Source: Pavona decussata (lineage: Eukaryota). Taken from it: a stretch of 64,000 nucleotides of DNA. Each line of letters starts with the position of its first letter. Within the stretch, counting starts at the first letter, position 1. Made by a program: the position numbers and the translations under genes. Of this stretch, positions 4,456 through 55,500 are shown in pieces. Location: positions 3,906,001 through 3,970,000 of the forward strand of contig CDRNST010000062.1 of the NCBI GenBank assembly GCA_977016875.1, in the 5' to 3' direction. The notes beneath the pieces are model-generated. The model ran no database searches, was not told the DNA's origin, and saw only the letters and a program-made list of their open reading frames with translations.

Positions 4456-5292
4456 TTAAAGCAATACCGGGACATAAGCCACAGGTCGGGATAAGTCCTG
4501 CTGTGGTTGCCAAACTCCTGACACTCTCTGGCCGCTCAGTTCTGCAGTAGAGACTGTGTATCCACTCGGCTTGCTTGGCGCTTCGCTACTTGAAGCTGTT
4601 GGACTGGGCGAGCCGTTTGCCATTGCCCCACCGCGCGTCTCGTCCACGCTTGAAATTCTCTGTTGGATTTGCGAGGGTAGAGCGGGTTGGAAAGCTTGGC
4701 TGGTGTACAGTGCCCGGTTGTGGCTCATCACATCCGCGGGACGAAATGAGTGCGTTGAATCCAAAGAACTAGCGAAGAGCTGACGTGATGGCGGAGTGAC
4801 GGAGTGGTGACTGTTAACTGCGGTTACATTCGGGTAGATGACTGGATAGCCCGGCGAAACGGAGTGATGAAACGCTGTTGCCCCATTTATTTTGGAATAC
4901 ATTGGATCCGCGGACAAAGCAGTTGAATGAGCTATTGTTTGAGGCAATTGATTCGTTGGGAATTTGTCAACCGCCATCATTGGAGCACTGTATGGGGAAA
5001 ACATCGGGGCTGATAGCTCTTTCTTCTGCAGTGATTTCGGCTTGCGTCGCTTCGGTTTGTACTTATAGTCCGGATGCTCTTGGATGTGGATTGCTTGCAG
5101 TCGTTTCGCCTCGGCCACGAACGGTTCCTTCTCGTCTTGCGAGAGCATTTTCCACTCTGCTCCGAGCCGTTTGCTTATCTCAGAGTTGTGCATTCGCGGG
5201 TTTATCGCCGCGTACTGCTTTCTCTTGCCGCGACTCCACACCATAAACGCGTTCATGGGTCTCTTAATATGCCCTTCGTCTTGCTTACCCAT
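4456..5292 (-). CDS. SoxB: Group B Sox (HMG-box) transcription factor, intronless, SoxB2/Dichaete-like
   Basis: 278-aa ORF with an N-terminal HMG box [15 protein letters not shown]...[15 protein letters not shown]...[26 protein letters not shown]. It has a very short N-terminus, an S/P-rich tail and a single coding exon, as is typical of SoxB. The exact paralogue cannot be assigned without a tree. Confidence 0.96.
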
Positions 5293-5459
5293 ACTCGTAG
5301 AGTTAGTTGCTAATCGGAGCGGTGTAACTTTGTTAAGAGTGAGTGTGAGTTGATCTTCACGCGAGACCGGGTTCAGTCAAACTGTTTTCAAAGGAGCAAC
5401 CTCGGACTGTTTTGTGCTTGGTCGGCCGGCTCAACTGCTACAGCAACTTCCAGGCGTGA

Positions 5460-32467: not shown

Positions 32468-34993
32468 GATTGTTTTTTTGTCTAAAATGATACCCGCCAG
32501 GCTTGTGGTTGATCAAAGAGCGGGTTACCATATTGAATGGATAAATCCCTATCCAGCTGATAAACTAGTGTATTGAATGGAGAATATTTTTATCTACTGG
32601 ATACCAACTTATCCAATGGACCAAGTTATACATACATCTTATTCAATTGTTTTAGATATAATATGTGCACATATTTATGGGGGCGAGGAAAAATACGAGC
32701 AATTAGCAAAATCTTCTAGGGTATTAAAGGTAAAACCATCAAATAAGAGATTTATTATTTCATTGCAAAAAGATATTTTTATTTGGCTTTTCTTTTCTAG
32801 AAAGAGTGTTGAATTACACCCAGCATTATGTCTCTGTCCATCAGTTTCAACGCGTGCAAATGACGTAAACAACACAGAAAGCCATTGAAATGTTTTTGTC
32901 CGTATTCGCTCTGTTGTCAACTGGTTATATCAGGACACTACAGTGAATTACAGTCTTAATTTTTGCTTGTTCTTTTGACCTTATTTGGTGAAATGACATA
33001 AAAGTGGAATAATAAACTCTGTGAACAACTCTGAATCTCTCATGGGAACTGGAAGAGAGGGATGTTAGAACTCCCCCTTTCTTCACCATTTCCCACCCTT
33101 TCTCTCCTAGTTGCTGTTCCTTTCTCTTCCAGTCCTCTCCTCTCCCATTTCCCGTCCACTTCTGCCATGGAATCACTATGGGGATGGACATACATTGTAG
33201 ATTGCAAATTGAAAAAGTTGATCCAGATTTTTCAAGACCTGAATTGGCCTGAGTTGTACAAATTTGAGAACAAGTACATAAAAACTCTGTTAAAAGCCTA
33301 GAAAGAGAAACTCATTCAGAAGAAAGTTGTGTGTTATGTGCCATGTCTGGTTTGAATTTATGGTTAAATATACACAGCCATTTTACACAACCTTCTGCTG
33401 AATCTCTCATTATTTTTTTCTCGCTTTAAGAATTTTTTTGATAAATATTTTGTTCTAATTTCATCAACCTTATTTTCTTGATACATTATTCTTAGTTTTT
33501 TAGGACTCAAGAGAATGTAGCAGGGATGTCCAGAGGGTATCTTTCCTATTGAATTTGTTTATGTTTTATATATATGTTTGGGCTTGACTTTATTATTTAT
33601 GTTTCTAAATTTTTTGTTTACTATAGGCTTCAGCACCTGGGTAGCTCTTTAAGGGCCCGGCTAACATGGGAAACATTGTTTCCTCATGGTCGCTGAACTA
33701 GCAGGAAACAAAAAGTTGTTTTTCTTCTCTGGTGGTTAAACAATCATTTTTTCCAAACAAACTATGATGTTCCGGTACAGATCTGAGACCATTGCAAAAT
33801 GTTTCCTCTCTGGCAAAACTGGGAAACATGTTTCAGAAGCCAAATTGGCATCTTTCAAGTAAGAATGTTTTTTACTCTTCTCAAAAAAATTTTTTACACC
33901 CATGAAGCAAGACGTGTCGACAACATAATTATGTTCCTCACACATTCAAACTGTTTCCTAGTTTAGCCAGGCAAGGATTGCCATATCCCTATATCCCTTT
34001 AACTTAGAAGCTTCTCCCACCCCTCCCCCAAACCACCGTGACTTCCCTTTTTGCAAGGTGCAATCTTATTAAGAGCTCATTTTTTGTGCATGTAGCTCAC
34101 TAAAAGGTATTGCTCTGGGACGGGACAATATCATCTTTAGTTCAGATTTGCTTTTTGTAGGGAGAAACCTGTTAAATAACCTTATTAGTGTGTGTTGACT
34201 GGTGCTAGTCATTTTTAATGGTTTTGCTAATTTTTGTTGTTTTTTCCAAATAATGCTGGATATCTTCCGAAGTTTTTGACAATTCGGACTGCATGTACAT
34301 TGTGTAGCTCGGTTGCAAGCAGCATGTAGCTTTTTTTATTGTTAAGCATGAAATACATTTTACAGGCGTTAAAGTTCTATTGCCTTAAAAATATACATTT
34401 TAGTAATTTGTAATAATGACATTGTTACAACCAAAATTTAAAAGGTTACAGTTAGTAGTTGTATAAGTTATTTAAGGCAGTAAGTCAGCTGAACGTTTTT
34501 GCATTATGCAGTGTTTAGAATAAAGAGTTGGCGATAAAATAAAGAATTTTGAAGCTGGAATCTACGGTCTCTATGGTTTGATGTAAACGTCGACATACAT
34601 GTATATTTTGGGCGAATGACTCAACGAATATGTTTTTTAGGCCCTTTGACAAACCCACGGGCTGTTGTAAACAGGCAATCATATAAAATTTTCCAAAATA
34701 GTCTCCTTTGAATAAACAAAACAGACTTGAGTCTAGTGTGGTTGCACTAACACTGGGAATCCAATGTTGCCTAACAAGAAATCAGTTGGGGAAGGAGCGG
34801 AACATCAAATTCTAGCTTCTAAATCTTTATATCCTGCCACAAAAGTAAGCTGCCTTTAATTTTTTGAAATCATTGAGTCAGTTCGCAGTGCGTGGTTCCT
34901 GACAGCCACCTATACTCGTTTGGCCTTCTCTTGTACTTTCCAACGTCCGTTTTCAAGATTTTTTTACAGTAGAGCCCTTGGAGACTGAAGTGG

Positions 34994-35675
34994 TTATTGT
35001 TCGTGTGGGACCAGTGCAAGGTACTGTTGGACTTTCTCAGCCAGATCTGATTTCTTTTCTTTAGATTTCACGGTTACACCTCTCTTCTTGAGCCAGTCGA
35101 CTAAAGTAGCAGCGTTAACCTTGTGTAGCTGAAGTAAGATATATAATAGTCTGAGCGAGCTATTACTATGAAGGCAGAAGTACATGTAATTATAAGTGGA
35201 AAGCAAATAAAATGAGCTCTACATTTCGTTGGAAAACACCAAGTGAACCGCCTTCACCGGATACGTGTGGACGGAAGGCCAATTCGTAAAGAAAAAGTTG
35301 CGTTTTCAAACGAAAACGGGTGAGTGTGCCGAGACGGGGCCTGAGAAAGTGGAAACACGATGTCCAATTTTTATGTCTCTTTCTCGACTTCAACATTGCC
35401 GTTATGAATTCAGCCTCCAGATCGTAAAGCCACATTATGCGAATTAAATGACTTGGAAATAGAATAATTGCGATTTTGTAATAACGTTTGTAGCTTTTTA
35501 TTGGCGCCTTAGTCGTTGCTGCTTTACTAAGTTTCCTGAAAGTACATGTACAACGACCGCACCGCAGCCATGAAAGCTGCACATTAAAACGTTTCAATTT
35601 ACACATTTTTGGTTAGCAAGGCCTCACTCTGGCCTCGCGTGGAAAATAAGCCACTGAATGGGTACTAAACTACAA

Positions 35676-35711
<36 letters not shown>

Positions 35712-38700
35712 AATGATAATAATTAATTACTTCTAGAGCGCTATTCAGTACAAAGACAGATCAATGGCGCTTTACAATCGATGTCTCTAGGATTTGTAAA
35801 AGTACTAAAATTGAAAATGGTAATACTGATAATTTGACTTTATCCTACCTGGTCATTTGTTGCCAGCTCCTTAATATCAATACCTTCTTGGATCTTTGGC
35901 TTTGGTTTTGGCTTTTTCTGGGGTGGGTCCTCAGGAGAAAAATCAATGACCTAATACAACAAATTATAAAAATACTGAGAGCTAAAAAGCAAACAAAAAA
36001 AAAAAAAAAAAAACGAAGAATTCTGCACAAGCAATCTAATTTTCTCACTTAAGTAATTGATGATTTTATCCGTTTCATCTCGGACTATAATTTCCCTGTT
36101 TCTTTCAGCCAGTCTTCCCTCCACGGCTAATAAGCTCCCTCTCAATCCCTCTGAAAAAGTAGCAAGACCCGCCTCTCATCTATAATTCCTTTGATCTTTT
36201 TGATCATCTAAATAAGAATACTCGTAGCCGTCTCCTATTTCCTTTGGGTGAAGTTGGTGATTAAGGAACATGCAAATCAATTTGTTACAGAACTGATGCA
36301 TTCATTTTATACAAGACATATATTTCGTTACCTTTTTAAGTAATAAAGAAGAAAATTCATACTTATACACTGAACGTAGGCATTGAAAAATGTAATCAGC
36401 GGAGCCAGTATCCCTCGAAGTACTAAATTTCCCCTTACAACGGTGAGCAGACAGGGTTAGCTAGACTACAAGCAGTCAAGTAAATGTCCCTTTCATGGTG
36501 GTGGTGACTGTGTATATTAAAATCAGTCCAAGGAAAACGATTACATCGATTAACAAGGTATATGTACCTGTCTCTTTCTTGTCCGATCAACATTTGCCGA
36601 ATGAAACTGGGCAGGAAAAGACTCGTGCTGTAGTAGCTGAAGAGGAGCAGCGTGTTCGCCAGGTCCACGTGTTGAAACAGATAGTGAGCGTGTTGGTGTA
36701 TCGCTCGAACCTCGTTCCCACAAAGAATTAATATCCCAGATACCTTCGAACTCCTGTGGGGTCGCGTTCTTCTCCCTCTGTCTCTGACTGCTGGTAGGTA
36801 CTGCTTGTGTTATGACAAGCCCTGGTCTACTCTGGGGTAAACGCTTCACAACTTGTGTCGACGAATCAGCACTTTGTGCCATCGTAGTAGCATTTCTTTG
36901 AGCGACAGTAGGAGAATTCGTAAATCTTTCAATCATCCGCTCTAGGCTTGAATTTGAAGAATGGTCATCAACGCCATATTCCATTGTTCCATTGATGCCT
37001 CCTCCATTGGTTAGTACGTAATCCGGGCTAGCTCTATGGACTCTATGCTGGGATAGAGCGTGCCCTTGGCTCGTGTTTTCCATACGCCGGGCTGACTGTA
37101 GCGAAGCCAGAAGTGTAGAGTTTTGTGTTTGTAGTGAGTTACCAACACGCGCTTGTGAGACAGTAGCTGTTAGCGTTGGTTTGTGTCTGCTAGGCTGCAC
37201 TCTCTTCTTCGAAAACGTGGGGATGAGTCGAGTTGCAGACGTAGACCAACTTCGGCTACAAGAAACTGAGCGCTCAGTGTCAGGGTTTACAGACTTCACG
37301 ACGCGGTTGCTGGTAAAACACGGAACAAAGCGAGTTTCCGAAGAAAGGCAAGAAGATATTGGCGTGTAAGGGGGGGTTGTCCTCGGTTGATAAGTGGAGG
37401 GCGTTGTCATCACTTGGCTGACCAAGGGGGTGCTCTTCAGTTGATTGATAGTTTTATCATTTCCTGTTTGGAATTCAGTTTGGGAAGATGCAAGCTGTGA
37501 TGATATGAACGACTCCGCAGCAGAAGCGTTTGCTTGCCTTGCAACGTCTTGCGTACGCTGTTCTTGAATGGTAAAGGGTCTGCAGTGGTTCATCTGAGCT
37601 GGTTCTGTTCTTGTTAAGTTGCTGTAGTTTGCGTGGGTTGCCTGTTGAAGTCTGTTTGTCGGGTAGATTGGAGAAGACGTCAAAGTCAGAGGTGTCCCAC
37701 ACACGGAAGGCATGCGGCAGGATAGATCTCTTAGAAAAGAATTGAAAATCAGCTGGTGATCACAACGCGGTGACACTAAAGCTTGAGTGCTACGGATGCA
37801 GCTCGCTGGATATCTAGTTTATTCTTGTTAAGAAGTTTTTTCATTAATCACCAATTGACACGACTCACACGAGTTGTCACATGATGGGTGCTTAGAATAT
37901 CCATTTAGGCTAGAGCCCTTCACGCATCAAAATGCATGTATAGATGATGCCCTTCTCCCATCAAATAAATAAATATAGAGACATAACGCATCACGTGTGA
38001 AGCAGTATTGTAAATATCCTTAAACATCTCGCACTATTTCAAAATTTGAAAATGGGGGTATATAGCTACGCATTGTATAAAGCTTTCAAACACAAAACAA
38101 TGTATGTGATTTTTTTTTTTCAAAATTGAATCTGATTATCTCTGAAAAATGTGATTATCCTGGTTTTCTTTTTGCATTTCAATAACACTGGCTAAGTTCT
38201 TCTTTTCCCGGATGGTTACAATGAATGAATTAGTACTGAGTCACGGCCAATAAGATTTTCTCGCACCAATTCCCGAGATGCGGAGAACGCATGCGCAGTA
38301 GCAAAAGGAGACGTCGTCTTTAACGCCCGAGGGAGATCAGTCTGCCAATCGAATCCGTGGCCACCAAATATCAAGCTCTATACTATAACGGCTTTTGAGT
38401 ATTTATAGTGGTAAAAGGGTGTTAAACTTAAAAGGGTAACATGGTGCTTCTAAACTATCACTTCATATGTAGGATACGTGAATACTTTGCCTCTGATGTA
38501 AAAGAAATGGACATTGTAGAAAACATTTTCTTCTGGTGGCAGTCTGTATCCGTACTGTGTAGAAACAAATGAACAAACAACAACAACTCTATGCTTTAAC
38601 TCGCGGGAAGTCTAATATAATCTGGTAAGTGACAGACAACAGATGTCAGTGCCTCAGAATGGAATTAATGGAAGTCTCTAAAGCCTTGATGATCAAACAG

Positions 38701-39749
38701 AGAAACGATTCAAAATGACAACTTTTGTTGGAGGGGTAGGTGGTCAAATCAGTGTCAGTTTAGAGGCTTTATCTTGACTATCGAGTATTAAAGCACGTCT
38801 AGCTCACTCACTCGGGGAACTCTTCAGTGGCTGTCATTACAAATAGAACATCGTAACACTTCCTTCCAGTTACTTTAGCGCCAGAAATTCACCTACCATA
38901 AGTTTCCAATGTTTTCTTAGATCTTCGTAGCTTGTAAACGGACTGTCTTCTGGAAGCTGATGGGTTATGCTAAAAATTCGTCCTTTCTTTAAGCTAGGAT
39001 AATGGGAAACATGAAAGAAAATGATTAACAGTGTTATTCCAAGCCTTGGACGAGAGTTAAACATAAGATCGCTCAGCATGCACAAGTCAGTTTCGAACTC
39101 TATTTTGTAGGCTAAACTTTAAAACTGAGCCTTTCTGCGTAAAACTATTGATATGGTCTTGCTTAATTTGAAGAACTGTAGGGAGCCGCAAAACTGGTTT
39201 CTTTGTGTCACAATTAATCTGAGCTCGAGTATACCATGACAGGTAGCTTACCTCGGCAGCACGAAACACAAGTCGTCCGCAATAGCTGCGTCACTAATCA
39301 CGGCTTCGCTGTTGGTGTTGAACTCTTCCAGTGCTCTTGTTGAAGCAGTGAAATGTTCTGGCTGAGAACAAATATGGCAACATCACTTTAAGAGATTACA
39401 GTGAGTACTATTGTTCCAAGATCGAGATGATTTTTTTTTCGTTAGAAGGGAGTCTTATAAATTAAACGTTAACTTCAGATTCATTTCGCTAAAACTTATT
39501 CAAGAGAGATGTGGTTTGAAATCCGTCTCTTGGCAGTGTCTGAATAGACAAACTTTCGAGTTCTCTGAAGCGTTGTCCCAAAATTACATTCAAATTGCCT
39601 CATATAATGAATGCCATGTATATCTTGTTTACATTTTTTTTATACCTTACACGGCGTTAACTTCAGAGAGTAAGCTTGTAATCCAATGCAGATTTTGTCG
39701 CTAATGGTTACTTCCAAAACTACATTCAAACAAACAAACAAACAAATAA

Positions 39750-39792
<43 letters not shown>

Positions 39793-42400
39793 AATACTGA
39801 TTATTACAAATGAATAAATTGCCGGGAATCGACCTAGCTGATGACCAATTGAGGCCAGGAGCCAGGAGCCGATGAAGCACCTGACTCATTCCTGCCGAGA
39901 CAAATCAGCTTTTAACCACAAAGACTAAAAAAAAAAGGTATTTCTTAGTTTCAAAACAGGATTTTTGGCATGATTAAACAGTTGATTTCAGTTTTGTTAT
40001 AAGTTCTTTAGAAGTTGACTGACACGTACAGATAAAATGGAGATGACGCGATCACAGAGGTACATATGCACACGTGCATGTTATAAGAAAAAATTCGCAG
40101 TAACAACTGAACGCAACACTCAGTTCATTTAAACACATCTACTCATATCAGCTGTGACTTGTACTTACTCACTGCATTTAGTTTAGATTTCTCCAGCATG
40201 AAGTCACGCCCTAAAAATATCAAGAACACTGGATAGTTTAGTCAGTTCATCATAAACTCCCCACTCTAGGAAAACAACAACAACAACAAAAGTTTCACAA
40301 AGCAGGAATTCAAGAAGGCTGGGGGTGCATTCATTACCGTACATTTCCGAATATGATCCCCCACTCCCCCAACGAATAAAAGACATTGCCATCCAAACAT
40401 ATAAGCTGCACCCCCCCCCCCCTCCCGCCCCGCCACCGCTAATCTCGGACGCTGAAATCCTATGGACTGTAAGTGTTAACTGTTTTAGTATGCTTGCTTG
40501 CAGTATGCATGAAGTTTTTTCTTAGCACGACTCTTCTTCTGTCAATTGAACCCGACTGCAACTGAAGTTGAAAATAAAGCTTTCAAAATACATACGAGAT
40601 TCTTACTCTCGAAAACTTTGTCTTCAACTTTCGAATCTTATTCAGCAGGTAGAAGAATAGTAAATTAATTGACTGTCGGTTTATAAAGCTTTAACTCCCC
40701 AAAATTTCCACTGATACCAACTCCTACCAGAGAATTAGCTACTAAAACCACAACGTAATATTCGGAATTTCACTGGTATTACTAGTAGTATGCAAGCGAA
40801 ACTAAGAGAAATAGATTTCGGTTTGCACTGAATAGCCATTTCAGCATGTTGAGGTATTCTTTAAGTTGTAATTGTCCTTTAATCATCATCATACATGTTC
40901 CAGTCAAAGTGCACATCAAGAGGAATTCAATTTCTCATACCTTGTACAAGGAAGTCACCAGCCTTGTTCCAAAGCGGTGCAAGTTTCTGTTTCATGGTGA
41001 AGGAAAAACAAAACTGAAACAGACTCTTCGTCAAATCTACTGGCTCTGTGTTCTGTTTATAGATAAACACATTTGTTTAATTTATACAAGAGNNNNNNNN
41101 NNNNNNNNNNNNNNNNNNNNNNNNNNNNNNNNNNNNNNNNNNNNNNNNNNNNNNNNNNNNNNNNNNNNNNNNNNNNNNNNNNNNNNNNNNNNNNNNNNNN
41201 NNNNNNNNNNNNNNNNNNNNNNNNNNNNNNNNNNNNNNNNNNNNNNNNNNNNNNNNNNNNNNNNNNNNNNNNNNNNNNNNNNNNNNNNNNNNNNNNNNNN
41301 NNNNNNNNNNNNNNNNNNNNNNNNNNNNNNNNNNNNNNNNNNNNNNNNNNNNNNNNNNNNNNNNNNNNNNNNNNNNNNNNNNNNNNNNNNNNNNNNNNNN
41401 NNNNNNNNNNNNNNNNNNNNNNNNNNNNNNNNNNNNCGTATATTGTCAATGCAAAATGTCCTGGCTTTAAAGGCCACTCAAAGGAATTTTTCGACCTATA
41501 AAGGAACTAGTATGCCTGCGCCCCTCACTGAAGAAATACACCATTCTCATTGCATAAATAAGTTACCTGTATGTTCAGTTTTTGCAGGAGCTCTTGAAAT
41601 TTAGAGGATTGAATGATTGCTTCCTATAAACGAATCCCAAAATACAACAGATTAAATATTTGATATACCTACTACAACAATGTTTACAAAAGTAAGTTGC
41701 AACAACTGATTAATTGGTAAAACTTCTTTTCTCCTTTTTTCGTTTAAACAAATTCAACTTCACAAGTCATATGAAAAGATAAATCATAAATGAACAAACA
41801 AATAAAATAATTACTGAATGTCACCGAATTTTCAGAGCTATTTACATGATGTTAAAGAATATTGTAAGGAATGTTAATGTTTTGAATTGAACAGATTTTC
41901 AACCGTAATGGTAAGCCTGTTAAAAAAAAGTCATATATATTCGATTCCTTCTTGCCTGTGTTACAAGAAATAGCTGATTCCTTTCTTCCAACAGTGGAGA
42001 TACAAGAACTTTGGGCTCCGTAAAGATCAGTTCTCTGTGAAGATAAAAAAAACTTAAGCTTGAATGAATTTATTCGACACGGCATTGGCGGGAAACGTTT
42101 GAACCGGGCTTTATAGACGTAAGTTTAATACGCCTAACAAAAAGAAACTATGAAATATCTTCTGAGCATTTTCGAACATACGTTTAAAGCTATTTAGCTG
42201 TTCAGATAACAGTATAATATGTCTAATATCCGTCACAAATGTAAAAAGAGTTAAAAAGACGCTTACCTGCAACACATTGGCTGAATAGAGCTTATTTTGT
42301 CGTTCATTTCTGTTTGTATGGTAGCCTTTATAGCTGTCAGTTCGTCCAGATTTGGCAGAGGAGCGAAAAACAGACCGAAGAAGCCATCATGGTTTCTCAT
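34994..42400 (-). CDS. C18orf63: C18orf63/DUF4708 family protein with C-terminal SAP-like motif; 12 exons
   Basis: Phase-consistent exons: 42400-42267, 42034-41956, 41623-41567, 41052-40941, 40210-40169, 39719-39646, 39361-39252, 38993-38897, 38554-38478, 37813-36568, 35950-35849, 35128-34994. The peptides LFFAPLPNLDEL, QFCFSFTMKQKLAPLWNKAGDFLVQGRDF, CFVLPSLKKGRI, SPFTSYEDLRKHWKLMYGYRLP, FTYPASCIRS and SFLRDLSCRMPSVCG are collinear with human C18orf63 as recalled ([64 protein letters not shown]). Confidence 0.88.
35675..35720 (+). repeat. (GAT)n/(AAT) microsatellite, probable retroposon tail
   Basis: About 12 GAT units grading into AAT, flanked by an L2-like 3' stem-loop on the minus strand. 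Confidence 0.85.
38020..38322 (-). mobile_element. Kolobok-like non-autonomous element copy
   Basis: Minus strand begins TTAAAGACGACG...TTTTGCTACTGCGCATGCGTTCTCCGCATCTCGG, homologous to the copy at 25039. Confidence 0.5.
39728..39794 (+). repeat. Compound (AAAC)n(AAAT)n microsatellite
   Basis: Read directly; abuts the acceptor of C18orf63-like exon 6. Confidence 0.95.
41093..41436. other. Assembly gap (within C18orf63-like intron 3)
   Basis: Run of N. The flanking exons join in frame, so probably no exon is missing. Confidence 0.99.
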
Positions 42401-48131: not shown

Positions 48132-49516
48132 ACATTGAGCCATCTCGAGTGTAAAAAGGTTTATACCTCGACATCTTGAAACCTATATAATTATATGAAG
48201 CTTTAAAGTTTTAACTCGAAAAGATGAAGATAAATTTGGTATTTGGGTAGGGTATGGATCATATTAAAGTTAATGGCAAAACACAATTAATGTTAATAAA
48301 AACAATTCAAAATTAATACCCAAGATCAAAACTCTTCTTTGTAAATTTAAATAACTGCAAAATAATAGGAATCCCACTACTAATTTTCTAAGGCTACCTG
48401 GTTCGCCAGCGCTCCAAGCAACTATTTAACCCTAAAAAAAGCAGAATGTCCTTGCAACCAAAACATAGTATGTACACAAAAATTGCACCTTCAAAGCCTG
48501 AATCTTCAGGCTCCTTGGTCAGCAGTTGGTTGCCTGACAACCAACCACTGACAACAAGCCTTGAGGCTTTGGGTATAAGATTGTAAAGATAAAGTGTTAT
48601 AAAGAGCTCTTAGTTTGGCAAGGGATTGGCTCCTTATCAAGAGAAAAAAAAGTTTATAAAAAAATTAATGACATTCCTTTTGACCTTACTTGTCCAAAAA
48701 ATAATGCACTGACATTATTCTAATGTTGCACTCTGTTTCTTAAGTAGTCTTAAAACTAAATTACTATATGTTTGCTTTAAGCATTTAACTTCATACAATC
48801 TTTCCTAATTTTTCATAGAGTTTATATTGAATAGTGGATGTAATAATATCGTTAAACATTGGTATTTTAAGCCTACCTGCTTTCAAAAACAGCTACAATA
48901 CTTTGAATACTTTTACTTCAAACAGAGAAGTGCAATCATACTTTGAATCAGTTGTCATAGTACTTCATTATACAAAGCCTGTTACTACTGCCAGGCCACA
49001 AAATTTTGCAGTGCAATGTAGCACATAGATATGCGTTTAAAAAAAAACCCATTAAAACAAATGCAACTTTCTGCATCTGCACCTAAGTAGCCAAACAACG
49101 CATTGCCAGTATACTTTCATAACTCCCTCACAGGCTGTCATTCGAATTTCCAAGGGGGAGGGGGGATAACAAAAGCCAAAGCTTTTAAAGGAAAGTGAAA
49201 GCTACATTGGAATTTCTAAAGATTGGGGGGAGGGGTAGGGGTAGGGAAAAACATTCTGTGGGAGAGGCATGAATGCATCCTGGAACAACAAAATAAATTC
49301 AACACAACAAGTTGGATAGATACCCTTTGAAACTGCTGTCCTAAGTGAAACTAAATCAGATGAATCATTTAACTCCCTCACCAAACATACAAACAAACAA
49401 GCAAAACAAACACCCAGTTGAAAAAAAAAAAAGCTTTCTTTTACCACATATTTATAGAGCGGTTAAACTTTGTAACCCACAACTCCTCTCTCAAGTTTTC
49501 CTCTCTCTTCTTGTTT

Positions 49517-52500
49517 CTAAAAGTGTGGGTTAGAGTTGTGATGTGACCCATGTCCCACTGAATAATGAGAAGGTACCTGCAGATGACCATGAGGGACTTG
49601 TTGACCATGTTTACGAAAACCTGTAAGGACAGGTTGAAATGCAGATTGTCCGCCCGTTGTCCCACGACCTCTCTGTAAATTTCCAGGCGTTCCATATTGC
49701 ACATTATCAAATGCCCGCTGGCGCTGGAGGTTTGAATGATACCGAATATAGGAGGGGTGGGGATATCCTGATGCTGCAGGTCCCCTCCCCTGGGGCCTCC
49801 AGTTCTCCCTAGGGAGGAAGGGATCACTGTAGTGCTGTGCTGGGAGCGGGGCTCGGTGGTGAGATGGCCTAAAAGTGTCTTCTGTTAATGAAGCTGTCTT
49901 GGCCCACAACAGGGGTGGGGAAGATTCTCGAGTTGGCCAAGGATTCTGAGAAGAGAAAGATAGAACACATTTTTAATGCATTAATTGGATATTTCTCAGT
50001 GTTTAGGAAGCTATTGTGCTGTGGTGTTCTAGGATTTTGGTTAAGACAAAAAAAGCCTCTTGAAGTAAAGGCTTTAGGGTACTGCACATGTCAAGACAAA
50101 AAGGAAAAACTAAGGCTTGAATGGGATTCAAACATATGACCTTTACAATACCAACTGTAAAAAAAATGTAAAATGTAAATGAAATTGTAAGCTTTCAAAG
50201 GTGTCCGTGCATTCCAGGTCGGGATAAAAAGGGAAAAAATGGCAGCACATTGTTGAGGGTGTTCATGATATTTATACACGTAACTGTACAATATTAACAA
50301 GAAATATTTCGCTATTTGAAGTGACGATCAATTTACTAAAATGGCACTAATTTTACATGTTCCTGATACTGGTACAAAGTCTTTAATGTGAGTTAGTTAC
50401 CGCTTGTGCCAAGTCCTCTGTGCTCCATGGTTTCCCAACATTTGGCATGAAGGACAAGTTTTCACCATGCATTGCATCACAACTGAAATAAAAAAACCTC
50501 ACTGTTAGATGTCATTCTTGTAGGGTGTCATGGCTAATGGCACAAATTGGCAAGCAGTTTGGTTCAAAGCAAAAAATACTCCACAAAGACTTTCCATGAC
50601 ACATGCTGATATAGTTCTCTGCTCATACTGTTCAAGTTCCAAGACTAGGGTTTTATAGCAAGACTACAGGACAAAAAATCACGTCAAATCAGCACTTTGA
50701 GTGTGACCAGACACACTGCACATTGTGGTTTTCTTGTTGCTAAAAAATCCAATTTGGATACATGTAGCCTTGAGATATGAAGTACAATTTTCAAACAATT
50801 CATGCGATGTTGCATCAAGAGCAGCATTAGCTGGTTCATGATTACTTATTCATGATTTAAAGCAGACCAATAGGCTATCAAAATTAGGTAATATGAACAG
50901 GACGACCGGACTAATGGAGGTTTCACCCATTACTTGGTGCATAAAAGGGTCTGTAATAACAGGATGGGTATAAAGCACAGTAATACCTTCCTCCTCTTGC
51001 AGCAGCCAACATGTCAGGACCAGTGATGCCAAGCCCAAGTGAAAACACAGTCTTGCCGCGGCCTGAAGTGTCAGTGTTCAGTGCTTCGTGGGACTGATTC
51101 CAGTTGCTACCAGAGGCCTAAAGATCAAGTCAGAGAAGATACAGCTTTTAGTCAAAATGTTGGCCCATTCTCATTAAACAGAATCATTTCTTACAGCGGT
51201 TACCAATAGCACGCAGCCTATCGCCTTCAAAAGACTCCGATAAAGTTGTGTTTTGGTGGACATCAATCAAAGGAAAGCCGTTGAAATTGTTTTGAATTCT
51301 GAGAACATTTCAAGGCAACAGAACGAAGAAATTTACAGTTTTATCCGCTGACAGATGGTAAACTTTATGAAAGTTGATTTCCAAGACAGATTATCTAAAA
51401 AATGCACCAAAACGCAACTTTATCCTACTCTTTTGAATGCCATAGGTCGCATGTTATTGGTAACCGCCGTAATATGCATTCGTGGAAATTTTGAAGAAAG
51501 AGAGTTTTGCAGCAGACAACAATGGATAAGACTTCTTATTTTGCTTGCTCGATGACAAAATCAGTTGAGAAGAATCTTTCTGCAAGGACACCATGTCCAA
51601 GCACATTTCTACTTTGTTTCTGAATTACAGATGACTGTAGAAAATAAAGAGTGATAAAGATGACCAACACTATATGCAGCCTTTATTGTTTCACAGGGGG
51701 AAGGGAGGGGGTTCTTACTTGAGGATTTACAGAATTGAATTTAATCAGACACTTCTGAAACAAGTAAGACAATCCTCATTGTTATTTCCAGATGTGATAC
51801 AGAGACAGATCTAAATTCTGGCTGCTGCAGGTCTTTAGACTCTGGAACTACTGTAGTATAGTTATGAAAATCAATACATTATAACAAAAAACATTCTTAC
51901 ACTAGGAATGTTCGCCCACACTGGATTGCCGTGGATGCTGCTCCCATAACTTGACCACTTCAAGCCAAGGTCAAGAAGCCCTGCGCCTGAATTGCTTGGC
52001 AGTAGGCTCTCATTCAGGCTCTTGGCATCTTCATTGTCCTCGTCATTCTTGTTGTTGCCAGGGAAATCTGACAAGGACCAGCAGCTATGGTATAGTGTGT
52101 CCTGAGAGCCATGGATATCTTTCTTGCATAGTGTTGAGCCTTCAGGATTGGTGTTAACAGCGTCAGAACAATCAGATGGAGGACTGGCTTTCTCCCACAC
52201 ACTCCTATTGGAATCAAAATTGTCAGCACTTCAGCCAAAGTCAAACCTCTCAAATGCAGACTTAAGGGTGTCCACTTACATGACATATCAAATTAATGCA
52301 CAATTCATCAGTGAAAAACAGTGGAAGCTGCATTACTTTCTCCTTCTTCATGTAAGGTATGACATGTATGATTGACAGAAGTGTAACTTACAGATCACTC
52401 AGAGGAGTTTTGAGTTGAAAAGTCATGTACTGTAGCAATGGAATTGACACTAAATTAAACATCTTGTTGAATTTTGACCCTAAAATGTACCATTAAAACA

Positions 52501-55500
52501 ATTTCCATACATGTTCAGGTTTACACAGCCAGGGAAATGGACCATACACACTATTAAAATAATTTGTATACACCCCGCTAATTTGCCACTTTTCCCTGCC
52601 GAGGTCAGCAGTCAAACTAAGAACTACATGTACTGCATTGATACATAGAGTACAATGAACTTAAAGTTAATCAGTCACTGACTGAACATAAGGTGTCTGC
52701 CAGTGTCTCATTAAATTTTAGTCCATCATACTTTCACATACAGTGTAAGGTGTCCATACCTGAGGCTCTCGCTAATGGATACTGCTTTGTCATCATCACC
52801 TTCCTCAGAGCTGACGGTGACGAGCATGGGACTGAGCATCTGGTCCTCATTTCCAGTGCTCACCTTGGCAGCTGTTTCTATTTCTGACAAATTTCCTGCA
52901 TTCCCATCATTTGCACTGGTCACATCTTCCTCCAGTTGCTGTGAAGGTGATGGTGGTGGTGGTGATGATGGTAATGCCTGTGGAGTGGTGCTCTTCTCCT
53001 TGTCATCAATATCATCATCAAGTTTACTTTCACTATCACCTTTGGTGCTGTCTTTTGACATTAGCTGGCTGTCCTGTTCACTGGAGACTGAAAGCAGACT
53101 ACTCCCATCTCCTTCCTGATCCTTGGCATTTGCAGGTTTAACAAACAAAATTGGGCAAACTTCAGTTGTTGGAGAGGTCTGCGTCTCCATGGAAACCATT
53201 TCTGTTAAGGGAAGCTTCATATCTTTTGAAGAATCTGCAGCTACGTCAATAGCGCATGATGAATTTTCCTTAGTTTCTGACCGGCTGTCTGATAGCTTTG
53301 CATCATGAGTGGTTCCCTTGTTATCAACCTGTGTGACACTGCTTAGGGCCACACTATAAATACTTCCCAGGCCGCTATCAATCGGTGTCATGTGACTTTC
53401 TGCCATGCTGGTATTGGTGTCGTCTTCATTCAGAAGTCGAAGTTTGATTGGTGCACCAGAAAGGAAGTTGATTACTTCTGTGAGTTCCTCTTGAGAAGCT
53501 AATGACAGTTCACTCTGAGAAACTGAAAAAGTACAAAATAATATTATTTACTATCAATCAGGACATGTTCCCCAATAAAAAAAAAGTTAGCAGACTGAAT
53601 CTTTTCATTGCAGGGGTTTCATTCTAGGTGCTGGGCATCAGGCAAATTGATCCTTTATGAACATGACTGTACCAAGCTGCTTTAAATGATCCCACTAAAG
53701 TTTTCACAATATAACATATCAAGTTAGCTATTTTACCCAGGTGCACTAATCGACAATGTATTACCTGCCTGTTCATGCTAAGTTTTGTTTATGTGCAGTT
53801 TTGTCTACCTACTTAAAATCCTGTTGCTCTTTGAACATTGCAATTGATTCCACTTGTTTACAAGCAAAATCAATCTTCATCAAATTAGATAAACTTACTT
53901 TGCATAGTTGGTTTAAAAGTTGGCAATGGAAACTGAGGAACTGATCTGGACCAATCACTTGGTGATGAGGGGTCGTCAGCCTTGCAGTCTTCATCAGCGA
54001 TCTTTCCTGGGATGCTGCTACTACCTTCTGGGACCATGGACTGCTCTTTAGCTCTCTTGGCCCAGTGTCTTGGGCGTGGTGGAGGAAGGGGTGCAGGGTC
54101 ATCAATGTCGGTGTCATGATCGTCGCCCGTGTCAGTACTAGAGGCTACGGAAGTTCGGTAACCTGAAGAAAGGAATGTAGTGTTAATGCCTGTTTAAGAA
54201 AGTGTTAATAACTATTTTATCTGACCAATTACAACAAATATACACTGAACCTGAATCGAACAAGTGAACAACGAATGCATGCATAAGCCAAATCACAAGT
54301 GATTTAAATTTCAGCTCAACCAAGAGACATGTTTGTTGCAGGGATATAGCTAAGAAAACCCTCAGTACTAAACAAAGCTGGCTCCTTTGGACTATGGACC
54401 TTTAAAATCAGCATCAAGTATTTGTGTTCTGTTGAAATTTCAGCCGGCGATAAGATCTCTTTCAGATGGTGAAATTTTCCCAGTAGCTCGCTCTTACTGA
54501 CATCCCTGGTTGGGCACTGCTGTCCATCATCTTCATAATCAATTTCAAAAAGGACATTGACCAATTTTCCTTTTTTCTGATATTGGTTGTCATGGGAAAA
54601 ATATGATTGACAGCAATGTAAAACACAAACAGCTGGGTTTGGACATCAAAGTTTATATGACTGTTATTGAAAGGGATGTCAATACCATATTAACAAAGGA
54701 AAGGTTAGACAGGTAGAGCAGTGAAAAGGCAGACAATGTAAAGTGTAAATAAAATAGTTATGGTATTGAATGTACTAATTTACCCTCCAAGAAGTTTGTG
54801 GCCGTGGCTTTAGTGCTCTTTACGTCAAGGTGAGGGGGGGGGGGGGGGTTACCTACCTACCCCCTCCCAGGCTAAGCAGCTCCCAAAAGTAAAGGCAAAA
54901 TAGGGTTAAACGGAAGGTTGATAGTCGTAGGAAAGCAGCCAGACTAACTGACAGATTGAGTAAACATAACTTCACAAATTAAATTTAAAAAATAGCAGCA
55001 ACTACCTGTACCTGTTGATTCATTTCTAGTGCCAGCACCAGATACGGCATTCAGATTGGTTGCGTCAACAACAGTATTTGGGTTGCTGAGTGTCTTGGAG
55101 GCTACTGACTTCCGTGAGAATATCTTAGATGTTGCTTTCGAGAAGGTCTTTCTAAAGCTCTTGTGCTTGGGGAACTGGGAAGTGTCCAGTTTGGTTAGCA
55201 ACGGCGGTGACTTGGAGAGGTCGCGCCGCTTTATATGAATGGCAGGCAGAGGTCTTTCCCTGAAGAGAGAAGTCACAGAATTCTTAAAATTGTTTGGAAG
55301 CTGCACACGACATGAAAGACTCCACGTTCTCCCAATATATTGAGCAAACTTGAAGAAATGGGTGTCTTAACTGCTGATAGCAACAAACAGTTTTTGCTAC
55401 ATTATTCCTCGCGAAGCGAGGTTAATAAATTCATCGGGCCGAGCCCGCCCGAGCGGAGCTAAGCCGCGCAAATTTTAGCGAAAAATATATTTATATATAT

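Follow-up and report, generated by a model that had tools for sequence, protein, structure and literature searches.

A predicted SAP/HeH-type domain at the C terminus of the coral C18orf63 protein

Introduction

Does the orphan protein family C18orf63 (Pfam DUF4708, PF15813) carry a second domain that hints at its function? The question is raised by a gene on the minus strand of a 64,000-nucleotide stretch of the stony coral Pavona decussata (assembly GCA_977016875.1, contig CDRNST010000062.1, positions 3,906,001 to 3,970,000). This whole stretch is referred to here as the window, and its first letter is position 1. An earlier note on this DNA, made from the letters alone, claimed that the last two exons of the gene splice in frame to the DUF4708 exons and encode a nuclear localization signal (NLS) followed by a Ku70-like SAP module. 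It further claimed that this fold-linker-SAP layout is ancestral.

C18orf63 has been described as oocyte-enriched in vertebrates (PMC9570461), as peri-meiotic in the human fetal ovary (PMC12055976), and as upregulated in pre-leptotene spermatocytes (PMC12081002). In the 37 papers found to mention it, the gene figures as a marker or a statistical hit only, and a literature search found no mention of DUF4708. The kind of domain analyzed below is well known; its occurrence in the C18orf63 family seems to be undescribed.

Results

A conserved module ends the C18orf63 protein

Judged from its sequence, the window gene is the 12-exon stony-coral orthologue of C18orf63. The C-terminal module of its product consists of a lysine-rich patch, a short helix, and a 40-residue helix-extended loop-helix (HeH). 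The same module ends every full-length orthologue recovered, i.e., those of cnidarians (stony corals, Nematostella, an octocoral, and a jellyfish), of starfish, brittle star, sea cucumbers, sea urchins, crinoid, and acorn worms, and of oysters, horseshoe crab, and a teleost. A 23-row alignment revealed six invariant residues in exon 12, namely, L1, L9, W12, L13, K25, and K26; the lysines K25 and K26 occupy the loop and the beginning of helix 2.

When 1.84 billion representative proteins were searched with a profile built from this alignment, 245 matched at an E value of ≤1e-3, 122 of them at ≤1e-10. Among the listed representatives of at least 400 residues, DUF4708 was found with a local profile in 71 of 76, and the module lies nearly always within 30 residues of the C terminus. 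Taxon names were obtained for 30 representatives. The named vertebrates with the module are skate, shark, bichir, gar, bowfin, several teleosts, coelacanth, four frogs, newt, and caecilian; further named carriers are a tunicate, a tick, three insects, and brine shrimp. Full-length proteins with the module come from more than 30 species, and the presence of the same C terminus on DUF4708 proteins of dozens of animal species is more than chance.

Many short database frames start with a translated polypyrimidine tract that is followed by Q-L-x-K-V-N. These frames indicate that corals, sea cucumber, oyster, and fish all encode the HeH core in a last exon of its own, preceded by an intron at an identical position. 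The HeH domain is one ancient terminal exon, and the DUF4708-linker-module layout is ancestral in animals. In this respect, the claim of the earlier note is borne out by cnidarians, echinoderms, hemichordates, a tunicate, molluscs, arthropods, fishes, and amphibians.

The distribution raises the question of whether amniotes kept the module. No bird, reptile, or mammal was present among the best 150 of the 245 module-bearing representatives (30 assigned by name and the rest by the nearest DUF4708 anchor). The amphibian and coelacanth proteins score 66 to 76 bits against the module profile; in amniotes, the module may have been lost or may have diverged below 50 bits.

Sequence profiles link the module to the SAP/HeH superfamily

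For the domain analysis, exons 11 and 12 of the coral gene were analyzed singly, and a piece of an orthologue, P0043:648-727, served as a proxy for the joined C terminus. Exon 12 alone matched the Pfam models Ish1 (E value, 5.9e-4) and HeH (E value, 0.074), both below threshold, the exon reaching 20.6 bits versus a cutoff of 26.6; Pfam SAP was not matched by this exon. When ten C-terminal pieces were scanned singly, HeH (PF12949) matched nine of them (best E value, 1.3e-7) and Ish1 (PF10281) matched six (best E value, 1.6e-5). One frog orthologue matched Pfam SAP with an E value of 7e-4. Scans of the vertebrate orthologues were expected to yield another Pfam family in the C-terminal half but did not. 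Because the scores lie below the curated cutoffs, the precomputed Pfam annotation comprises DUF4708 only in all listed full-length family proteins but one, the jellyfish protein P0060, which has a precomputed HeH entry; the cutoffs leave the HeH domain unannotated in nearly every family member.

Among the representatives listed, the only long matches of the module profile outside the family were three proteins, P0205, P0214, and P0217, with E values of 2.5e-9 to 2e-8. In Pfam scans, these proteins match SAP (E values of 4e-26 to 5e-28) as well as HeH, Rho_N, and Ish1. Alignment of the module with eleven SAP repeats of these proteins by hhalign gave a probability of 95.8 % with an E value of 6.7e-9 over 40 ungapped columns.

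The three proteins comprise 431 to 771 residues with 4 to 6 tandem SAP/HeH/Rho_N repeats, and one of them derives from a Logan contig of 1849 bases. The consensus of their repeats is ..YSKMTVAELK.LCK.RNIKV.SK.KKDE.I.LL. Among the representatives listed, no other protein from outside the family is more closely related to the C18orf63 tail.

Structural models of the module resemble SAP/HeH domains

AlphaFold models were generated for exon 12 (mean predicted local distance difference test [pLDDT] score of 77.7, with helices at residues 6-15 and 26-39) and for P0043:648-727, the last 80 residues of the orthologue (pLDDT of 83-88, with a short helix, a helix at residues 42-51, a 10-residue loop, and a helix at residues 62-79). 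Both models contain the helix-extended loop-helix, i.e., two helices joined by a loop of about 10 residues within about 35 to 40 residues.

Comparison of the models with 48,161 solved chains by VIA-align revealed that, of the 30 best structural neighbours, about half are domains of the HeH superfamily. The models superpose on these SAP/HeH domains overall with Z scores of 4.2 to 6.1 and root mean square deviations (rmsd) of 1.3 to 2.4 Å over 40 to 51 residues. The neighbours include the Rho N-terminal domain (Z of 5.8 to 6.1), the SAP domain of Hcc-1 (Z of 5.8, rmsd of 1.9 Å over 42 residues, 33 % identity), the SAP domain of Ku70 (1jjr; Z of 5.7, rmsd of 2.2 Å over 51 residues, preceding helix included), the SAP domain of SF3B2 (rmsd of 1.3 Å over 40 residues), and the LEM domain of emerin (Z of 5.2). 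Other neighbours of top rank are E1B-AP5, MKL1, SLX4, FAN1, PIAS1, Tho1, MANF/CDNF, and a LAP2 LEM-like domain. In Foldseek, the best template modeling scores (0.66 to 0.77) were obtained with SAP, CDNF, and Rho domains.

Significant links at the profile level and an agreeing predicted fold indicate that the module belongs to the SAP/HeH superfamily, in which the Pfam models nearest to it are HeH and Ish1; on these two lines, the assignment can be regarded as established. The SAP/HeH identity proposed earlier for the C terminus is thus matched by both sequence profile and predicted structure. The narrower label, SAP, holds at the level of the superfamily, whereas the closest Pfam models are HeH and Ish1 rather than SAP, all below curated cutoffs.

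A basic element precedes the HeH core

The KKPK motif in exon 11 fits the core of a monopartite NLS, K-K/R-x-K/R, and the RKR at the end of exon 10 is positioned 12 residues upstream of KKPK, which is the spacing of a bipartite NLS; both are matches of pattern only. Of 102 family members, 89 have a K[KR]x[KR] motif in the 50 residues preceding the HeH core, versus 4.6 % of control linker windows, and the bipartite pattern is present in 41 of the 102 versus 2.1 % of control windows. At the sequence level, these counts support the conservation of a basic element. The net charge of the HeH core is +5 in the coral and ranges from +2 to +9 across the 102 members. By analogy with Ku70, the basic patch may be a nuclear import signal.

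The module exons are spliced to the DUF4708 exons

To place the module exons in the transcript, contigs of four public runs were mapped on positions 34500-40000. Contigs of runs X1, X2, and X4 skip 35951-36567, and contigs of runs X2 and X4 skip 35129-35848. X1 and X2 represent one sample, so the three supporting runs correspond to two independent studies. The joint of intron 10, mapped as 35948>36566, was read with the cut two places further right. Read on the plus strand, both skipped segments are bounded by CT..AC, which corresponds to GT..AG on the strand of the gene, and the contig depth inside the introns is about zero. Four upstream joints of the same gene were recovered as well (37813>38478, 38554>38897, 38993>39252, and 39361>39646). 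The runs were taken as RNA by guess; contigs with canonical ends that lack the introns cannot be genomic DNA and indicate spliced transcripts. In a related coral, DUF4708, linker, and module are encoded together, in one 718-residue frame on a single contig of 2953 bases (P0025).

The junctions predicted earlier, 36568>35950 and 35849>35128, both in frame, are matched exactly by the contigs of these three runs, and the junction-spanning contigs connect exons 11 and 12 to the DUF4708 gene. Exon 10 ends with a complete codon followed by GT, AG precedes exons 11 and 12, and GT follows exon 11; these borders place both junctions in phase 0. The translation of exon 11 contains QKKPKPKPK and ends with NDQ. 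Exon 12 begins with LHKVNAATLVDWLKKRGV, and the stop codon follows directly after its coding part.

The contigs are 95-99 % alike to the window, which indicates that they come from other individuals or from a close relative. In the last exon, V10>A (position 35100) was found in the RNA contigs of all three runs and gives the same residue as in other corals, and Y36>C (35022) and V40>I (35011) were found in contigs of run X1 only. The three substitutions leave the invariant columns untouched and reflect allelic or sister-species variation.

Structure of the coral C18orf63 gene and its surroundings

Pfam DUF4708, the N-terminal domain of the protein, matched four exons (E values of 5.5e-10, 2.7e-8, 9e-6, and 1.6e-4), which are colinear in the profile (positions 86-123, 162-197, 196-232, and 228-262). 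A tblastn search with Montipora and Acropora proteins named C18orf63-like by NCBI gave 11 colinear pieces from 42400 to 34997. Together, these matches indicate 12 exons (Table 1). The linker encoded by exon 10 matched no Pfam family and is similar to coral orthologues only (36-92 % identity); this segment of about 415 residues is poorly conserved and presumably disordered. A search of the DUF4708 profile against the sequences of the Protein Data Bank (PDB) gave no usable match.

Table 1. Features of the coral C18orf63 gene in the window
Feature	Position	Strand	Evidence
Exons 1-9, encoding DUF4708	38478..42400	-	Pfam on single exons, tblastn, contig joints
Exon 1, approximate	42400-42266	-	
Exon 2, approximate	42036-41953	-	
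Exon 3, approximate	41617-41561	-	
N gap, inside an intron	41093-41436		
Exon 4, approximate	41055-40939	-	
Exon 5, approximate	40220-40167	-	
Exon 6, approximate	39723-39646	-	
Exon 7, approximate	39361-39252	-	
Exon 8, approximate	38993-38897	-	
Exon 9, approximate	38554-38478	-	
Exon 10, linker, about 415 codons, rich in S/T/P/Q, RKRQ at end	36568..37813	-	open frame, joint 37813>38478
Intron 10, GT..AG, phase 0	35951..36567	-	joint in contigs of X1, X2, X4
Exon 11, 34 codons	35849..35950	-	translation, orthologue alignment
Basic patch KKPKPKPK in exon 11	35894-35917	-	
Conserved short helix IDIKELA in exon 11	35861-35881	-	orthologue model, residues 28-33
Intron 11, GT..AG, phase 0	35129..35848	-	joint 35128>35849 in X2, X4
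Exon 12, coding part, 44 codons, HeH/SAP-like core	34997..35128	-	translation, Pfam, AlphaFold model, structural matches
Exon 12, helix 1 of the model	35084-35113	-	AlphaFold
Exon 12, basic extended loop	35054-35083	-	AlphaFold
Exon 12, helix 2 of the model	35012-35053	-	AlphaFold
Stop codon TAA	34994..34996	-	
3' untranslated region, minimum extent (mapped region starts at 34500)	34500..34993	-	contigs continuous with exon 12, covering 34500-35131

The search results for exon 10 consist mostly of single-exon frames, some of which run into the intron; as products of unspliced gene calling, they were rejected as evidence for an alternative stop.

Many unrelated metatranscriptome contigs, together with loose-ended contigs from the other runs, match three short intronic stretches, 35266-35317, 35757-35833, and 38271-38310, which are probably interspersed repeats that are expressed. 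The coral metatranscriptome, run X12, gave matches to interspersed repeats in the introns only and none to the gene itself. Intron 11 contains a GAT/ATC triplet microsatellite at 35666-35729 as well as pieces of interspersed repeats, and a long T run at 35982-36024 is positioned just upstream of the acceptor of exon 11. These last two repeats, 35666-35729 and 35982-36024, were skipped in the contig mapping.

Around the gene, a 306-codon open frame at 4459-5376 (minus strand) has the HMG-box signature of a Sox-type gene and is located about 30 kb downstream on the same strand. Upstream of C18orf63, several open frames of 100 to 273 codons at 49444-55366 (minus strand) are probably exons of a neighbouring gene.

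Discussion

The proposed reading of these results is that C18orf63 is a nuclear protein whose HeH domain tethers DUF4708 to DNA, RNA, or chromatin via the linker; its probability is put at roughly 70 %. The lysine-rich patch, as its pattern and the analogy with Ku70 suggest, would direct nuclear import. The cationic HeH domain would bind the phosphate backbone of DNA or RNA, or else a chromatin protein, and the DUF4708 domain would thus be held on a flexible leash formed by the linker. Such an action would resemble that of the SAP domains of Ku70, PIAS, SAF-A, and Tho1. For nucleic-acid binding by the module, the evidence consists of its charge and its invariant lysines, which point in this direction by analogy with known domains.

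Several points weigh against this proposal, and each is considered here with the alternative that it favours. HeH-type domains also work purely as protein-binding modules. The main alternative, which is appreciably less probable than tethering to nucleic acid or chromatin although it deserves serious consideration, is that the fold is a true HeH but acts as a protein-protein adaptor that recruits DUF4708 to a partner, with no direct nucleic-acid binding. Structural neighbours such as emerin LEM (which binds BAF), MANF/CDNF (which bind the ATPase domain of BiP), SLX4 (which binds MUS81), and the p53-binding domain of PIAS1 reach Z scores of 4.3 to 5.2, the same as DNA-binding SAP domains, and the invariant tryptophan together with the conserved preceding helix could form a docking surface. 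However, the net charge is positive in all 102 members, invariant lysines in the loop and where helix 2 begins are the usual signature of contacts with the phosphate backbone, and the best sequence relatives of the module are SAP/HeH/Rho_N repeats.

A second alternative is that the likeness to SAP/HeH domains is due to chance and that the module is a short amphipathic helix-loop-helix, a family-specific motif of unrelated origin. No module match reaches the curated Pfam cutoff (best, 27.2 bits versus 28.9), and Pfam SAP itself matched only one of the ten C-terminal pieces (E value, 0.12). The module profile found chance matches only among PDB sequences (Rab geranylgeranyltransferase beta; E value, 0.2), and Foldseek against the PDB gave nothing at an E value of ≤0.001 for either model. 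In VIA-align, Z scores of 4 to 6 are in a range common for small helical models, and the top-ranked match was a trypanosome RESC protein rather than a named SAP domain. The modest Z scores and the lack of significance in Foldseek are attributed to the small size of the domain. Against chance stand the profile-profile match to true SAP repeats, the selection of SAP-repeat proteins at an E value of about 1e-8 from the 1.84 billion sequences, and the share of HeH-superfamily domains among the top 30 neighbours. Taken together, these observations make an origin of the likeness by chance very improbable.

According to the last alternative, exons 11 and 12 are part of a different transcript or are used as minor alternative exons, and the main product stops in a retained intron just after 36568. 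It is the least probable of all. The splice support consists of short contigs, neither raw reads nor a full-length molecule from P. decussata, isoform ratios are not measurable from contigs, and the related-coral database frames P0017, P0023, and P0005 run into the intron, but such read-through is expected from splice-blind gene calling on genomic DNA, and both joints in three runs from two studies, the near-zero intron depth, and the full-length module-bearing proteins of other species speak for the spliced form.

The nuclear tethering reading can be extended to the germ line, although this extension is tentative and, on balance, rather doubtful. In the ancestral layout, C18orf63 would be a germ-line factor of meiotic entry whose HeH tail tethers DUF4708 to chromosomes. 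In amniotes, including humans, the tail would have disappeared or degenerated, so that the original function would be revealed by invertebrate, fish, or frog orthologues rather than by the human protein. By analogy, the peri-meiotic expression in vertebrates would suit a chromosomal role at meiotic entry. For C18orf63, the conserved terminal NLS-plus-SAP/HeH module provides a first concrete and cheaply testable hypothesis, that of a tethered nuclear protein.

Comparison with known systems places the coral protein as follows. Within the C18orf63/DUF4708 family, the coral gene shares the order of the exons and, in the DUF4708 exons and the last exon, is 62-89 % identical to proteins with the NCBI name C18orf63-like. 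The Ish1 repeat (PF10281), known from a fungal nuclear-envelope or stress protein, is the second-best Pfam match and shares the pattern L..WL...G and ..L...V..Y; Ish1 proteins have several tandem repeats, whereas the C18orf63 family has a single copy, matched below the cutoff. HeH/LEM-like domains (PF12949; MAN1 and the yeast proteins Heh1/Src1 and Heh2 of the inner nuclear membrane) are likewise a helix-extended loop-helix of about 35 residues, and their Pfam model is matched by most members of the family. In the Heh proteins, the domain is N terminal in a membrane protein, whereas in the coral protein it is positioned at the extreme C terminus after a linker in a soluble protein with no predicted membrane segment. 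In Heh2, a strong basic NLS and a long unfolded linker accompany the HeH domain.

The SAP domains of Ku70, PIAS1, SAF-A/E1B-AP5, Hcc-1/SARNP, Tho1, SF3B2, MKL1, FAN1, and SLX4 share the fold of the models (Z of 4.2 to 5.8, rmsd of 1.3 to 2.4 Å). In the coral protein, the partner domain is DUF4708, and the other known partner domains of SAP are absent from the Pfam scans; scans of the coral exons and of eight full-length orthologues revealed DUF4708 only and neither the von Willebrand A domain nor the beta-barrel of the Ku core. The special likeness to Ku70 suggested in the earlier note therefore needs to be narrowed. The structural match and the layout stand, but the Ku70 SAP domain is one of many equally good matches and no closer than other SAP domains. 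Ku70 is a good architectural analogue and not a special relative; in both Ku70 and the coral protein, the domain is C terminal, follows a flexible linker, and has a basic patch ahead of it.

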